63,815 nucleotides of DNA, filler included, from Polymyxa betae A26-41 (GCA_003693705.1; 5 parts of 5 records of this genome joined end to end with filler, not necessarily neighbours in it), one strand, 5' to 3'; counted from the first letter of the whole stretch, positions 40,503-49,106 are shown. A program made the numbers and translations. The notes: generated by a model from the sequence alone, not told the origin.

Positions 40503-41024
40503 CGATTGCTCGCTTCAGCTGCACATCTTCTGATTCTCTTTTACTCCGGCTCCGTGTGTTTCGGACCGAGTATGCATTGTTCGCCATGTAACTCTTAAAG
40601 AATTCTTTAGAGCACTTCACTACGTAGTAATAAACGAGTCTGTGATAGTGCTGAGAATCGATTGTATATTATTTCAGGGAGTCAGGGCCCAAGGTAGTTC
40701 CGCAGTCCGTGACGCAACTTCCGGACCTGATCACTTCCGACGGAATGTCCAAGAGTCTGCCCGCAGTCTTCTTAGCGCAGTCGCGCACTTATTGCGACTA
40801 ACGGAGAAAATATAGATTGATACACTCGATGAAGAAATCGGCAACTAGCAAGTAGAGCGGTTTCGTCAGATCGTGATAAAGTTGCTACAATAATCGGCAG
40901 CACTTCAGTCAGTGATAATGAATTGTGTTCTATTTCCAGCTCGAATCCCAGCTTCATTCAGCTCAGTCCGTACGGATACCGTACGGACTCCGCGGGAGTC
41001 GAGCCCATTTATACTACGGTACGT

Positions 41025-41197
41025 TGTGTCAGATGTCAGCGATACGTTGTTTTCAGGCAGATTAGAATAATGTATTCATTAGTAGGAATAAAGAACAGCA
41101 AGCTTGGACCCGATTACCGATCTCCATAAGTAGTTTCCGTTCCGATCATTCATATAGTCCGTCACCACAGAATGGCCGTAAGCTGCTATCCACCACA
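41025..41197 (-). repeat. 3' LTR (173 bp)
   Basis: Direct repeat of 48633-48796; PPT adjacent. Confidence 0.92.
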
Positions 41198-41883
41198 CCG
41201 CCTTCTCCCAAAACAAGTTTCATGAGTGACGAGAGTGAACTTGAGTAATAGAAGTATATAAAAATTTGATTGTTTGAGTTTTGAAGCACCAGTAAAACTT
41301 ACAGGACTATCCGCTGCCCTCGGTATAGATACAAGTAGGAAAAAAGGTCTCCTTCCTCATTGTTGCACAGTGAGATGAGGCAAAGTGTCCGTGCTTATCT
41401 AAGGAATCACTGGGTGATTTGGGTTATTTTGAAGAAATTCTAGTATGACTTGAGGATTCTCAGTACGGACACTGAATCCTGGGCACCATGAATTCTCAAC
41501 ATTGTCAAATCCCCGCTATTTAATAAGAAACTCTATATCTGTTTTTGTAGAATTAATCCTTGCATCAATAATTTTCTCAATATCACGCAATGCAGTATCA
41601 TAGGCAAATTGATTCAAAATTTCTTATGTATCATTAAGCGATTTTTCAGAATAAAATTGAATACGATCACCATGTGCCTTTTGAATCTCATTAGTGAGTA
41701 GGTTTTCAACTGAGAAAACATAGCCTTTATGAATATCAACTATTCTAAATGGTCCATGCCATGTTAATGATAATTTGCTGAGTCTCTTTTTTTCTGGAAC
41801 TGCAACCAAGACATAATCACCAATTCCAAAGTTTGGAAAAATCGATTGCGAGAGGAGTGTTCTCTATGACGCGATCCTTCAAG

Positions 41884-42736
41884 TAGGGTTCCGATCGGTA
41901 CCGTTCGGGTCGGGTACCGGTAGTACCGGCTACCGAAGCACATATAGACTGAAAGTCTCAGAAAACCCCACTCAGAAAAACCCAAGTTTCAGTATAAAAT
42001 TAATCTGTCATTTCAATCATTTAAAGCGCATTCCCCAAATATCAGGGAATTTAAATTTTCTTGAGTCGATGACTGTGGAGACCAATATATTCGCGACCGC
42101 AGTTCATAATCAGCTCCACTGAGACCGATGAACCTGGGATAGAGAGAACATCTTTCCCAACTTCACTAAAACCCGATTGGATCGACCTGGGGGCCGTCGC
42201 GAGGAAGGCTGATAATCTTATCAACTTCGTCCATGATCTCACCGTTTGAGAAGAAAAGGTGATGATCCCATCAGTGTCTGTCTTGTTTATCTGATCATAA
42301 ACAGTCCCCTCGGATTGATCGGCTGTTGAATAATTTCCATTTGAACAGATTTCAACATGTTTGGGGTCAATCTCGGTTCCAGATGCTGAAAAATGTTATA
42401 ACACGTTTGACACAAGGCTACTGCCGGAGCTTTCACTCAACAGTATGGGCTCGTAATCGCTCAAGACAGGATCGAAAACTCCAATCCCCAGATTGGCGCG
42501 AAGGAAAGGTGCATTTACGGGTCACAGTGGAGCGTCAGCCCTTCGCTTCCGAGTATGAAACAAGGTTACAAGAAGGGTTTCAAAGTCCGCAACGCAGACT
42601 TTCCTAGCACTCTCTATTCCTAGGCCGGTAGTGTCGGTACTGTAGTCGGGTCGGGTACCACCCATCTACCGGTATCCGACCGGGAGACTACCGGAGCGCC
42701 GGCAGTCGGGTAGTACCGGTATCGTTCGGAACCCTA
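41884..42736 (-). mobile_element. Non-autonomous hAT derivative inserted in the Gypsy integrase region
   Basis: TIR TAGGGTTCCGA/TCGGAACCCTA; ACCG/CGGT-rich subtermini; hAT dimerisation motif DVLSIPGSSVSVE..MNCGR..IG...RL; degenerate 8-bp TSD CCTTCAAG/CTTTTAAC. Confidence 0.82.
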
Positions 42737-45105
42737 CTTTTAACTTCAGTGATATCATATATGTCCTTATGCATATCATTTAGGCTTTCGATCAACTTAT
42801 CAGTAGCCTGAAAAATTATAACAGATTCTACTTCAATTGGACTAATTCCAATTTCAGGATGAAAGAAGATTGAATCAAATGGATTGTCAGCTGGTAGGCC
42901 AGTCATGACTGTAATGGGTGCGCGACCTCCCAAGCGCTGTTGCGGCCTATGATTTAGCGTGTGCTGAACCAAGTTAATTAACAATGGCCATTGCAATTTG
43001 TTGTAACGTAATTCTGAGATTAAGGATCGTAATAGATTCAAAATCTCTCTGCTTATAATTTCAATAGAGCCATTTGAGTAATGAGAATATGATGTAACAA
43101 AATGTTGATTTGTACCAATTCGCTTTGAACTCTTTCATGGTTTGGGATAGGAAAATTGATGCTTGGTCAGAGACATAAATCTCTGAATTCCCAAATGTCG
43201 CACGCCATTCCAACAATGCTTCAGCCGTTACTCTTGTATTCGGTATCAAAACTGGTCTTAACAGAACCATTCCAGAGAAATCGTCTCTGATGACAAATAA
43301 CCATTGATAGTCAACAGTATTATCCTCTCTAGGAGAAATATACATATAGTCAAAGTGTAGGACCTGATTAGGACGTACTCCATGACACGCAGTTCCCAAC
43401 GGGCGCGGGATGAGAAAACCCTTTCGTGTTGGTAAACAGTGCAAACATTCGGAGCAGATTTTTCGAATATCTTGCTCCATTCCTATCCAGTAGACCCATT
43501 GTTTCAATAAACTTAAAGCCGCGTGGTAACCTAAATGTCCACTATGGCATCCAGCATGAGCGATTATACACAATCGGAGTCGTAGACTTTCACATTGTAT
43601 TAGAATAATAATACGCCCATTAGAATCCACCAATAATCCATCAGAATCCCGAGCGCTTTGGCTATTTGGAAAATATTGATTTTGCATCCCTGCAATTTCT
43701 GAAGTCTCTGGCCAGAGCATATTTTTGAATGGTTGGATTCTAAAAGAGGAATCTACAGAATAGGGTTCATTACAGTGATCAGAAATGCGTAACGCATTAA
43801 TTTGAGTCACTGGCTGCGTATCAAATTTGCCTGCCCCCCAGCGAGACAGTAGATCAGCCCAATGATTCTGTTCACCAGGGATATGATGGATCACATACTG
43901 ATAATCACGTAATTCAATACCCCATCTGATTAGACGCTCTGCAGACTGTTTAGAGCATTTACATGGATTATACATCGAAATGAGATTTCGATGATCCGTA
44001 TATAGCCTAAACGGTTGAGGCATATGTAGTGGATACGATAATTTGCGAAAAGTATCTTTGTTTGCGAACGCTTCTTTATCTACAGTAGCCTAGTTCAGCT
44101 CTGATCCATTAAAACGATGTCCAGCGAAACCAAGTGGCTGATGTCGCTGTTGATGAAACGGCACATGTAGATCTTCTGTCGGAATTTGAGTTACAATTTT
44201 TAAACTAGAATGATAGCTGGCATCACAGAATACACATTGTATCATGTTTTCATTTGGATATGCCAATTGAACAGAAGCAGCAATTGCCATTTTCAGTTTA
44301 TTGAAAGCATTATCGTGAAGGCTGTTCCAACCAAAGTTAGATAATTATATACGATTCGTAACCGCTTTTGTTCGTTTTTTCTTTAACTTCATAGTAGTTT
44401 CAATCAAATCCTGCAATGGAGTTATAATTCCGTTGTAATTTGGAATAGATCGACTCATCCATTGAGAAGCCATTAAAGTCTGCTGTAATTCACGAGCAGT
44501 GGTTGGTGTTGTCATATTAGCTAAAGCCTGAATCCGAGATGGATCATGAGAAACACCATCGGATTTAAAAATTCTCCCACAAAACTTTAACCTCTTGCAG
44601 AAGGAATTGGCAATTTCCAATGTTGAATTTTAGGTTAAATGTTTCCGCTAATTTCAGAGTTTTACTCAGCTCTTCTAACAATTTTTCCTGAGCTTCTGCG
44701 TGTCCAAGTAAATCATCTATCCAAATGATCAAGGATTTATATAATAAATCACTAAATATCTAATAAATCACTAAATATCTGAGTCATTCTTGCTTGGAAT
44801 TGTGTCGCAGAGTTCAATGCTCCTTGAAAAAATCGAGTTGGAGTAAACACCCCACGATCAGAAATAAAGGAGAACATTTCCTGACAGGTTTCATCTAAAG
44901 GCATAATCCAAAACCCTTTAATCGCGTCTAAAATAAACCAATAGTTTGATTTGGAAAAATATTGAACAATAGATTCCAAAAATGGCATAGTCCAGGCTGT
45001 TGAGATACAATGAGAGTTGACAGCTCTGTGATCAAAATATCATTTCCCAAAAGGACTTCAGTGTTTAATTGATCCCATATGAGACATCTCTGATTTGGAA
45101 ATATC

Positions 45106-45278
45106 AGATTTCCTGCTTTTGTCTCAAACTTTATGTCAATAACAACTGCCTGCTTAATCTCTATAAATTCTGAGTTCGGCATTTGTAATTCAGTGATATT
45201 TCCTGCTTTTGTCTCTAACTTTATGTCAATGACACCTGCCTGCTTAATCTCTATAAATTCTGAGTTCGGCATTTGTAA
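45106..45278. repeat. ~90-bp tandem duplication in the Gypsy protease region
   Basis: LQMPNSEFIEIKQA.VIDIK.ETKAGN encoded twice. Confidence 0.9.
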
Positions 45279-45660
45279 ATTCAGAGATGGCTTAACTGAT
45301 TCGATCTGTAAATTATGGTCAAGTGCTCTTAGTTTATATAAAACGTTAGTTGACATAATAGTGGCATCAGTTCCACTGTCGAGAAGTGCGTTACAGATCA
45401 ATTTGCCGTCAGCCAGTACGACTTTAACAGTACTTTCAGTTTTCAAAAAATCACTGGCTACCTTCGCTATAGTAATATAAGCAGAAGATTTTGATGATTT
45501 ATTATTATTTTTAAGTACCGTATAGTGCGGGACTTTGTACACTACGGGACTTTGTACCCCCCCAGTGAAAATTGATGTATATTTTATAATATTTCTTTTG
45601 TGAGGACATTTATATTGGCGCAAATGAAATATCTGCGTAGGCCACGTCAAGCCGAGTCGA

Positions 45661-46143
45661 TTGATGTATAGAATGTCAATCTTTGTCTTTTTCTGTGATG
45701 GTGAGGGGCTCCATCAGCACCAGCCAGGCGAGGTCATCGACATCGTTGGAGTTGCGTCTGGCGATTCAGGCCGAACCTGTGAGAATCACTCAGTTTGTGG
45801 GTCGTCCGTCAAGCTGGGCTCTATTGTCAGGATTCGGGCGATGCAAATTTTAACAAGTAAACGTCTGAGTGTGTATTCTGAAACGAAATGCGACCCTGTT
45901 TGCTATCTCGTAGGCAATAATGTCGAGGAGACTGCACTCGCTGTGTTTCTCGTCACAGATGGCGTAAATGGCTGCCGAGTCGGCTTTATGCCCAGACATT
46001 TTGTGTTCCTGAAACACAGATACGATAAGCAGCTTGCGAAAGTCATTGAAGATCTTTCGGTCTCCGATTTAAAAGCTGATCGAGCAAATTCCAACCGGAA
46101 TTGTGGACAGCGCGCGGTGCTACTTCCTGATCAACTGTATTAA
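45661..46143 (+). CDS. pogo cargo gene: HIRAN-like beta-barrel protein with C-x2-H-x2-C motif; likely in-frame intron 45857-45913
   Basis: IDIVGV..GRTCENHSVCG..V..G..V, EETALAV..V.DG..CRVGFMPR; open ORF inside the TIRs. Confidence 0.65.
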   Translation: MMYRMSIFVFFCDGEGLHQHQPGEVIDIVGVASGDSGRTCENHSVCGSSVKLGSIVRIRAMQILTSKRLSVYSETKCDPVCYLVGNNVEETALAVFLVTDGVNGCRVGFMPRHFVFLKHRYDKQLAKVIEDLSVSDLKADRANSNRNCGQRAVLLPDQLY

Positions 46144-46174
46144 AAATAAACAAAGCCGATGAACCAGAGCCAGT

Positions 46175-47447
46175 TCAATCGTCGAAGTAATTAAACCCTT
46201 GACGGCGCCATGAATTACGAGCCGTTTCACTATTAATTTCTTTAAGTGAGGCAATAATCCATTCGGATAAGAGCTCTCTTGACGGCGGCTTGATTTTTGC
46301 GAAACGATCTTGTGTATCCAGCCATTCCTCAAATCGGTGACGCATTCGCGTTTTCAAAGGCTTGCCAATTCCTACATCGATTGGCTGTGCGAGGCCTGTA
46401 CATCCACCTGGTATATGCTCAACCTGAATTCCGAGGTCTTGAATTCTGGTAACGATAGGTGCCATCAAATGGCAAAGGTACGAGTCAAGTAAGAGCACAG
46501 CTCTTTCTTGATTTGGGTTATTAGCCCGAATGTAAGGTTCCAACACCTGTCGAACAATCATGATAGAAACCAGGAGCACAATTGTCTTTTTTACCTTATC
46601 GATCCATTTGATCATCATCTTTTCGTCCATCCAGGCCTTATCCTGGCAAGCATAAACTGCACCTTCTGAAAACGAAGAGAAGGACCGAGCAATTAAACCA
46701 GAAGATTTGCCCTTGAAAATTATCATTGGAGGAAGAATGTTGCCATTCGCTGTCACAGTGACGCCAACAGTAACGGGTAAAGTCGAATCTGTACTTGAGC
46801 GAATGTTAACCGTTCGTTCTCCAATACGATTCAATGTAGTGCGGGGTTCCATGGAAAAGAATACAGGAGTCTGATACATGTTAAGAATTAAACTCTGCTC
46901 CGGAAACCAAGGCAGTTGCTTTCGGACAGATTGAATGAAGTCCACAGCCAATTCACGGGTTTCGGCAGGATTTTGCTGGGCCACATGTGTCCCAACTCTG
47001 ATTCCATAACGATGTTTTTTCAAAAACCGGCGGACGGTTGCAATTCTAGCCTCTTCGGATTTTTCCGTAAAGTCCCTGTCAAGGGACTTCGCGTAGGAAT
47101 CGACCATCCGCGTCGAAACCGCTGTTTTACACAATTATTTAAATTTTTTAAAAAATTAAAATGATAGAGGCAACGTTACCAAATCTGCATTCCCGTCTTT
47201 TGAAAATGTAGCTTAAAATGTCTTCTTGGTAGACGTCCAAAATGGACGGTGCACCAATGCAAATACTTTTAGCCGAACGTCGAACAGATTTTATTTGCTC
47301 GATATTTTTCCTCCAGCGAGACACTTGGCCTTGCTGGACGCTGAGACTGGCGCAAACAGCCTTGGCGGACATGCCAGGCTCGCGTTCGTCTATTGCTTTC
47401 AATATATCGAGCTTTTGAGCCGCGGTATAGGTCTTCCGTTGAGGCAT
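46175..47447 (-). CDS. pogo transposase (HTH + CENP-B HTH + DDE_1, DD35D); first Asp mutated to Tyr
   Basis: NMYQTP (normally NMDQTP), AWMD, LLLDSY, IPGGCT..AQPIDVGI; introns ~47122-47179 and ~46547-46594. Confidence 0.92.
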
Positions 47448-48632
47448 GATATCAGATATCGATTGGAATGAGCTGGGTAGGCTGTATATAGGTAGAAATT
47501 AAATTTCGCGCGCGGACATTGTCCGGGACTTTGTACCCCTCCATCCAGAATCATGTATATTTGGGGGGTACAAAGTCCCGCACTATACGGTAGTTTGTAC
47601 TGATCAATAAGTTGCTTTTGCTCTGTAGCAGAAGGCTTCAAAGGACAAACTTTGATGTGATGACCCTCCTTGTGGCATTTAAGACACTTTATAGTAGTGC
47701 GTGCTTTTTTCGCAACAGTATTAGCTGAAGACGAAGATGAGGGTGATGATGACGAAACGGGCCGTTTCGCAAACTTGTTATGATTCGGTCGGGAATATTT
47801 AAAAACATTATCATAAGTTTCGACCTTTTCATATAATTCAGCTACGAAACCGCATCATTCGTCCTCTAACTCCGACCGCTGCCACTGAATTTGGTCTTTC
47901 ATATGCAGCTTAAATTCAATTGGCTGCAAAACTTCGCAAAGAAGACGGACATAGTTTTTCGGGCCATTTTTTTGAAGAAAAGGCTGCCCGAAAATTATTT
48001 GATTCGATGAGATAAACAAAATCATGGACCAAATGTGAAATTCGGTCCCGAGGGGGTAAATCCATCCTCATTCGTAAATTGGAGACGACAGTCTCACGAA
48101 TTTGATGAACAGAAGAAGCATCAGCCTCTAAATATTCATCAAATACATGTTCCAGCATCTGGTACGTGACGTTGTTGCGGGTTGTGCCTTCCGGAAGTTT
48201 GTGAAAATGATGGTTCTCCAAAAAGTTCATCAAGCTATCGTCAATCATATACTTGATCGCCACTGGGAAAGCCGTAGCACCAGCTCCTCTCTATGAGCAT
48301 CCAGAAGAATGTCGCGATATCGACGAACTTGTTTTTTAAATTCAATAATGGATTTGCGATCCATTTTCATCAACAGAGGAGGTTGCGTCGGATGAAACAT
48401 AACTGCAGTATTCACTGCTGATGATGCAGTTGATGACTGCATGCGAGCGTTAGCACCGAACTGGCCCAAATTCTCCCCTTCAAAATCCATGCGGTCACTG
48501 TCTCGAGTGTTCCCATCACTCTGAGTATTCAACCGATTCCCCGCTCGGTTTAACACTTCTGTAAGAGCTTCCACCGCCGCAGATGCTGATAACGATGTCA
48601 TAGTATAGCCTTTTTTTAACTACAGAAATTTC

Positions 48633-48796
48633 TGTGACAGGAGTCAACGATACGTTGTTTTCAGGCAGATTAGAATAATGTATTCATTAGTAGGAATAAA
48701 GAACAGCAAGCTTGGACCCGATTACCGATCTCCATAAGTAGTTTCCGTTCCGATCATTCATATAGTCCGTCACCACGTAAGCTGCTATCCACCACA
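48633..48796 (-). repeat. 5' LTR (164 bp)
   Basis: Matches the 3' LTR except a 9-bp indel and a few substitutions. Confidence 0.92.
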
Positions 48797-49106
48797 TACG
48801 TCTTCATACTTTAATCTTGTTCGCATCTTTGTCACGCATCAGATTCATGCGTGAGTCTTTAAGGCTTCTCTGCGTGCGCTGATCTTCAATCTGCGTTCGC
48901 ACTTTAAAAGTGATAGAAGATTTTATAATGTTTTTAATAAATCTGATGCACTCCCCTCCTCAAAATATGTCCTCAGTTGAATTTCCTCTTAGCTAGCTGT
49001 TTACATCCATCGAAAATATCGAAGATTGATCAAATAATCAAATTTCAGTTTCCTTAGGGTTTTGGGGTTTAAGGGTTTAAATAAATTCCCATATGAAAAA
49101 GTATAT

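Follow-up and report, generated by a model that had tools for sequence, protein, structure and literature searches.

One-gene transposons are typified by the pogo and Tc1/mariner groups. Elsewhere a transposase can have a dedicated partner, as the Myb/SANT protein is the partner of Harbinger transposases. Surveys of pogo elements report no such additional gene. In the accessible part of the report on Passer, a pogo group, a listed oomycete element of 1,755 bp with a transposase of 485 amino acids leaves no room for a second gene, and the diatom names Fragilari- and Thalassiosira are absent among the listed rows of its table (PMC7386202). Ciliate transposons of the IS630-Tc1-mariner (ITm) group carry additional ORFs, some of them of unknown function (PMC7325037, PMC3464196, PMC5405496). 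The element described here lies in the window, by which we mean the whole stretch of 63,815 nucleotides from Polymyxa betae A26-41 that was analysed. It is a 2,073-bp DNA transposon (positions 45518 to 47590) in which two genes, a transposase and what we call the cargo gene, stand tail-to-tail within terminal inverted repeats (TIRs). A first-pass annotation had read the locus as a two-gene pogo transposon with a HIRAN-like, putatively zinc-binding cargo gene, and had suggested that it defines an undescribed family.

The ends of the element are as that annotation described them. The left TIR (45518 to 45540, plus strand) and the right TIR (47568 to 47590, minus strand) are complementary at all 23 of 23 positions, and the flanking TA dinucleotides (45516 to 45517 and 47591 to 47592) share one phase of the retroelement reading frame that is interrupted, as expected of a precise insertion with duplication of the TA, so that the boundaries of the transposon are exact. 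The left TIR starts with CCGTA and is of the Passer type when compared with the published Passer table. A direct copy of a 13-bp core of the TIR, a putative transposase-binding site, is found just inside the left end (45545 to 45557, plus strand), and a further copy, inverted with respect to the right TIR, lies at 47524 to 47536 (plus strand). The left subterminal copy is also present in a sister element, L001, which was found through a transposase 77% identical to that of the window and which has a nearly identical TIR and 67 to 69% DNA identity over most of its length. At L001 4518-4604, the transposase-side terminal TIR has apparently been replaced by another small inverted-repeat insertion, and a further, distant DDE_1 remnant occupies L001 7637-8125. 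The stop codons of the two window genes are 31 bp apart, with an AATAAA on the cargo strand between them (46145 to 46150), both as annotated. The AATAAA was considered as a family hallmark and rejected, being present in 7 of 25 other elements.

The target was a Gypsy retroelement, and the insertion point is between its gag-like and protease regions. The retroelement, analysed in the piece from 40503 to 49106, is a full-length LTR element on the minus strand (41025 to 48796), with LTRs of about 170 bp at approximately 41025 to 41197 and 48633 to 48796 that run TG...CA and are flanked by a 5-bp duplication, TACGT. It has protease, RNase H, and integrase matches and a purine-rich tract adjoining the 3' LTR, and its pol frames are broken at several places. 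A 90-bp tandem duplication (96% identity over 81 nt) occupies 45108 to 45278 in the protease region. A further insertion of about 850 bp (41884 to 42736), at the integrase end, has imperfect inverted ends of about 20 bp starting TAGGG, nested GTACCG-rich repeats, and flanks that agree at 5 of 8 bases; it is possibly an old hAT-like MITE. Related elements at four other loci (L005, L007, L008, and L153) adjoin LTR-retroelement genes (RVT_2), as the window element lies within Gypsy, which could be due to a target bias or to the repeat-rich nature of such regions. Sequence words of the element are common to the DNA runs of five organisms and two soil metagenomes, and more than 65% are shared in two.

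The transposase gene, on the minus strand, has three exons that sum to 389 codons, stop included. Exon 1 (47180 to 47447) carries an N-terminal helix-turn-helix (HTH), exon 2 spans 46595 to 47121, and exon 3 (46175 to 46546) holds the second and third catalytic aspartates. The two introns of the first-pass annotation are both GT-AG, of 58 nt (47122 to 47179) and 48 nt (46547 to 46594); at the site of the latter L001 has an intron of 360 nt (L001 5516-5876). The domain search gave DDE_1 (PF03184) at an E value of 2e-18. The annotated D-35-D spacing was counted on the translation and is present in 102 of 103 scored relatives. In Passer the DNA-binding region consists of BrkDBD plus HTH_Tnp_Tc5 or of HTH_Tnp_Tc5 alone. 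Among relatives, HTH_Tnp_Tc5 matched with a best E value of 6.5e-6 and BrkDBD weakly (E = 0.05), with HTH_Tnp_1 and CENP-B_N often scoring higher. A DDE_1 transposase, with a DDD triad in its relatives, together with a TA target-site duplication and TIRs are features that place the element in the pogo superfamily. It fits Passer by triad, target-site duplication, and TIR, and we call it Passer-like by these features, apart from transposase phylogeny. The first catalytic position, aspartate in 102 of 104 scored relatives, is a tyrosine in the window copy (46874 to 46876), as had been pointed out. To judge from the triad, this transposase is probably catalytically dead, and the copy is probably nonautonomous.

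The cargo gene lies on the plus strand, where the ORF from 45661 to 46143 is open throughout. It is not an antisense shadow of the transposase, with which it has no overlap, nor a fragment of the retroelement, since its place is within the TIRs and it shows no retroelement homology. Homology searches were made with the unspliced ORF or with single exons. A word search and an Atlas feature search with the unspliced ORF returned nothing, and an exhaustive search found 577 relatives (50% clusters) at E values of at most 0.001, 87 of them at 1e-10. The matches fall in two stretches, residues 18 to 64 and 85 to 150, approximately, and in columns 66 to 83 only 1% of homologs (n = 150) have residues. 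This gap marks the GT-AG intron of 57 nt, phase 1, that the annotation had placed at 45857 to 45913 and whose in-frame translation 99% of the 150 homologs omit. The cargo of L001 is interrupted by an intron of identical position and phase, there with an in-frame stop, and the matches of L035, L038, and L044 are split at this point of the profile. The intron separates exon 1 (45664 to 45856), whose conserved part runs from about 45718, from exon 2 (45914 to 46143). The beginning of exon 1 is less certain, and here the annotated ORF stood only in part. In homologs the protein starts some five residues ahead of an H-P-x-G motif; the first 15 or so codons of the ORF, which have no counterpart in them, are probably noncoding. 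The in-frame ATGs of the window align to ATA and TTG in L001, and the L001 start aligns to an ATG at 45698, common to both elements, that the window has shifted out of frame by one base, which indicates either a 5' frameshift or a new start in the window copy.

Selection on the gene was measured exon by exon. Between the window and L001, dN/dS was 0.19 in one exon, 0.12 in the other, and 0.15 summed (Fisher P = 2e-13), at a high dS of 1.6. The remaining divergent pairs gave 0.07 to 0.28, and a nonsignificant 0.56 was obtained for two closely similar copies of one assembly. In the comparison of copies that the first-pass annotation had proposed as a check, the ORF is maintained by purifying selection in related elements. 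On the evidence of splice position and substitution ratios, the cargo gene is protein coding and under purifying selection. Pfam and PHROGs searches of the family gave no match, and searches of PDB sequences gave none beyond decoy receptor 3 at an E value of 3, which we regard as chance. Hundreds of "hypothetical" proteins that have no Pfam model gain an identity as members of this cargo family.

A second proposed check was whether the cargo occurs with DDE_1 transposases inside TIRs, and here the association was found from both directions. Starting from the cargo, and including a metagenome scan, a convergent pogo transposase was present at 25 of 30 informative loci (those with at least 600 bp downstream), which are partly nonindependent, L019 and L025, and likewise L006 and L008, being near-identical families. 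On seven long cargo contigs, one of them from an assembly of the diatom Fragilaria crotonensis, the convergent transposase was there in all seven. Most loci have a TA-CC(G/A)TA TIR at a distance of 150 to 500 bp on the upstream side of the cargo; at L002, L004, L006, L007, and L009, both TIRs of a pair were recovered around the two genes. Starting from the transposase, all four families (L001, L044, L045, and the P0050 family) have a tail-to-tail cargo gene. The P0050 family shows one TIR at five different flanks, with four of those contigs extending to the cargo; it moves as a two-gene unit and is apparently intact. L042 has two divergent cargo copies at 79-1076 with TIR-like sequences in between, probably two elements back to back. 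Cargo and transposase proteins are each about 50% identical on average, and their distances are correlated over 19 loci (Mantel r = 0.54, P = 0.0002). The groups found in both trees are the window with L001, L010 with L011, L006/8/45, and L016/19/22/25/30, and the deep branches are weak. The window and L001 form a branch separate from the diatom-type elements. Matching clades indicate shared descent; physical interaction is no part of that. Across the loci compared, the cargo gene travels within the TIRs and has diversified alongside the transposase.

The five informative loci that have no clear transposase are short, decayed, or possibly deleted copies. They would also fit a captured host gene that either hitchhikes in the element or serves the host; two of them, L017 and L020, look open, and some stand-alone host copies may exist. 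Yet we found no nonmobile host counterpart, L038 keeps a transposase remnant, and the cargo of L020 differs by a dS of only 0.47 from its counterpart at L016, a locus with a transposase. Purifying selection over many separately inserted families is also unexpected of a passenger, and we regard capture of this kind as very improbable. At L017, no transposase lies within 1.2 kb downstream. Long low-complexity stretches are appended at the N or C terminus of some cargo homologs, among which are P0160, P0124, P0151, L017, and L020, candidate nonautonomous or domesticated copies. A pattern-based scan of low sensitivity found neither cargo relatives in viral contigs or prokaryotic genomes nor close transposase relatives in viral contigs. 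One homolog labelled cyanobacterial by NCBI (P0508), on a 3.3-kb MAG contig, most likely comes from a misbinned eukaryotic contig carrying a diatom transposon. A phage tblastn match (E = 3) was antisense to an annotated gene and was set aside as chance.

The tight one-to-one pairing and codivergence would be expected if the cargo were a partner of the transposase, whether a second subunit, a nuclear import factor, or a regulator, with its fold serving as a scaffold alone. Basic clusters in the C-terminal tail, present in 114 of the 211 homologs that have the motif, point in the same direction. That basic tail is absent, however, from the cargo of both the window and L001, and the transposase retains HTH domains of its own. 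We regard a partner role as rather unlikely.

The predicted fold of the cargo bears on what such a gene might do. Folds were computed on two natural intron-less homologs, P0126 and P0281. With a 110-sequence alignment, AlphaFold2 gave a model of a natural homolog with a pLDDT of 94 and a pTM of 0.86. Against 48,161 solved chains, the first model reached a Z score of at least 5 with three chains alone: lp_0118 (7.0, over 89 residues at an rmsd of 3.3), the HIRAN domain of HLTF (6.2), and Rad5 (5.5); the next match was at 4.2. The second model gave 7.4, 6.0, and 5.9 with the same three. Over both models, the HIRAN superpositions covered 84 to 93 residues at Z scores of 5.5 to 7.4. TM scores among the structural matches were 0.42 to 0.59. 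In the Atlas, HIRAN clusters were found both by shape (TM 0.54 to 0.59) and by features (0.92), as was an unnamed, mostly diatom cluster of 66 members that is probably the cargo family itself. A phage HIRAN profile was built from 44 proteins fetched by a short motif, 43 of which are Pfam HIRAN, and it matches HLTF and lp_0118 at an E value of 3e-11. Aligned to this profile with hhalign, the cargo family scored a probability of 72.7% (E = 3e-5), with the VG, AI-x-V, and VG-F/Y-L motifs in register. Foldseek gave no match at E values of at most 0.001, and Pfam HIRAN (PF08797) was among the families listed at E values of at most 10 for none of 110 family members and not for the window ORF. The scores are moderate but the methods converge on HIRAN, and the resemblance that the first-pass annotation had drawn from motifs is very probably one of fold. 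Prediction supports a core of about 120 residues with a HIRAN-type beta-barrel of six strands and two helices. The annotation had named beforehand three outcomes that would speak against its proposal, namely, loss or decay of the ORF in related copies, lack of transposase linkage, and lack of a HIRAN-like fold, and none came true.

The insert reported as C-x2-H-x2-C is well supported but was counted one residue short. In the loop after the first strand, which reads G-R-S-C-x2-H-x2-C-G, the residues Cys (45778), His (45787), and Cys (45796) are conserved in 98%, 98%, and 100% of 261 homologs, and a fourth cysteine (45973 to 45975), before the VGF strand in exon 2, in 99%. The arrangement suggests a putative structural zinc site, in the loop that bears Tyr72 in HLTF. 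In HLTF, Asp94 reads the 3'-OH, and Tyr72 and Tyr93 pinch two bases (PMC5773155, PMC4666394). The column equivalent to Asp94 holds Glu or Asp in 87% of the cargo family (Glu at 45925 in the window), a mapping that is transitive through the phage profile and uncertain in register by one residue. The Tyr72-equivalent column, which we take to follow the VG motif as in HLTF numbering, is aromatic in 1% of the family, and the Tyr93-equivalent column in 5%. The NPYD loop of HLTF is replaced by a hairpin. With both base-stacking tyrosines lost and this loop replaced, the known 3'-dinucleotide pocket must be remodelled, and 3'-end binding by the cargo would be presumptive despite the acid mapped to the Asp94 position. 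Several arginines are conserved.

These residues admit another reading, in which the zinc-stabilised domain would recognise DNA or RNA of its own element and guard it against host methylation or small-RNA silencing, or regulate its transcription, in the manner of VANC. The loss of the stacking tyrosines with retention of basic residues would be compatible with this, as would codivergence with the element. There is precedent in the VANDAL/VANC system of Arabidopsis (PMC5735166, PMC10398659), accessory genes have been proposed in algal transposons (PMC12477816), and convergent transcription of the two genes could yield double-stranded RNA that needs countering. Against this, the cargo core is strongly conserved despite very different TIRs and untranslated regions, which would fit a structure-specific role better than a fast-changing recognition of sequence. 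An acid is also apparently retained at the 3'-OH-reading position, and neither structure comparison nor Pfam revealed a link to VANC in sequence or fold. An anti-silencing or regulatory function strikes us as doubtful, if far from implausible.

We favour the reading that this is a Passer-like pogo clade with a dedicated second gene whose product binds DNA ends or forks and is tied to transposition or to repair of the donor site, and we put its probability at roughly 45%. The cargo protein would bind DNA ends, or junctions of single- and double-stranded DNA, that arise during or around transposition; its substrates could be replication forks, the ends of the excised element, or the break left at the donor site. 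Such binding would raise the net copy gain of the element, possibly through end protection, through a bias of donor-site repair towards the sister chromatid as template, or through jumps timed to replication. That the cargo binds nucleic acid to the benefit of the element is what we infer. Purifying selection on the cargo between families, near the level of the transposase, suggests that the gene is needed for spread of the element, and its retention across about 50% protein divergence would point to a step in the life cycle at which the transposase alone falls short in these hosts. Counting against the favoured reading, Passer elements with one gene are able to transpose with no helper of this kind, according to the accessible part of the report on them (PMC9976928). 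A broader and more tentative version would see an old, widespread pogo/Passer-like clade, present in diatoms and in further microbial eukaryotes, as a two-component system, in which a HIRAN-derived, zinc-bearing protein from the fork-repair or phage-replication toolkit couples transposition to replication or repair. If true, it would be an element-encoded answer to the problem of how nonreplicative transposons multiply. The HIRAN-like fold makes the copy gain of cut-and-paste elements, by fork timing or gap repair, testable with a protein of 120 residues and with the apparently intact P0050 family element known from five sites. Since Passer transposons serve as gene-transfer tools (PMC9976928, PMC11840574), a natural helper would be of practical interest.

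Compared with known systems, the cargo protein stands closest to HIRAN, both that of HLTF and Rad5 and the stand-alone phage and bacterial forms (PF08797). It shares with them the predicted barrel-plus-two-helix fold, the aligned VG, AI-x-V, and VG(F/Y/H)-L motifs, and probably an acid at the Asp94 position. It differs in having no Pfam match, a hairpin in place of the NPYD loop, and no equivalents of Tyr72 and Tyr93, in adding the C-x2-H-x2-C and the distal cysteine, and in being encoded in a eukaryotic transposon. A dedicated second gene inside the element is shared with VANC of VANDAL, Myb/SANT of Harbinger, and the ParB-methyltransferase of algal Sola, which belong to other superfamilies and have unrelated domains. 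Our search of the literature, which covered neither Repbase nor most subscription journals, so that an earlier annotation may exist, found no report of HIRAN within a transposon or of this cargo-transposase pairing. The proposal of an undescribed two-component family holds in so far as the second gene is linked, selected, and unreported in that search, but multigene ITm elements are already known in ciliates. Those elements (TBE, Tec, Sardine, Thon, Anchois, and Tennessee) likewise combine a transposase of the IS630-Tc1-mariner group with extra conserved ORFs. Their transposases are, however, of the DD34E/DD35E IS630/Tc1 type, and their extra genes, a tyrosine recombinase, a zinc-finger protein, or an ORF2 of about 200 amino acids, are set apart by description, none being described as HIRAN. 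Passer (pogo superfamily; Gao et al. 2020, PMC7386202) shares with the present element a DDE_1 DD35D transposase, a TA target-site duplication, TIRs of at most 40 bp starting CCGTA, and occurrence in stramenopiles, and differs in that the ORFs described there encode transposases only. With multigene ITm elements known in ciliates, the novelty of the system described here is a HIRAN-like gene in a pogo/Passer-like clade.
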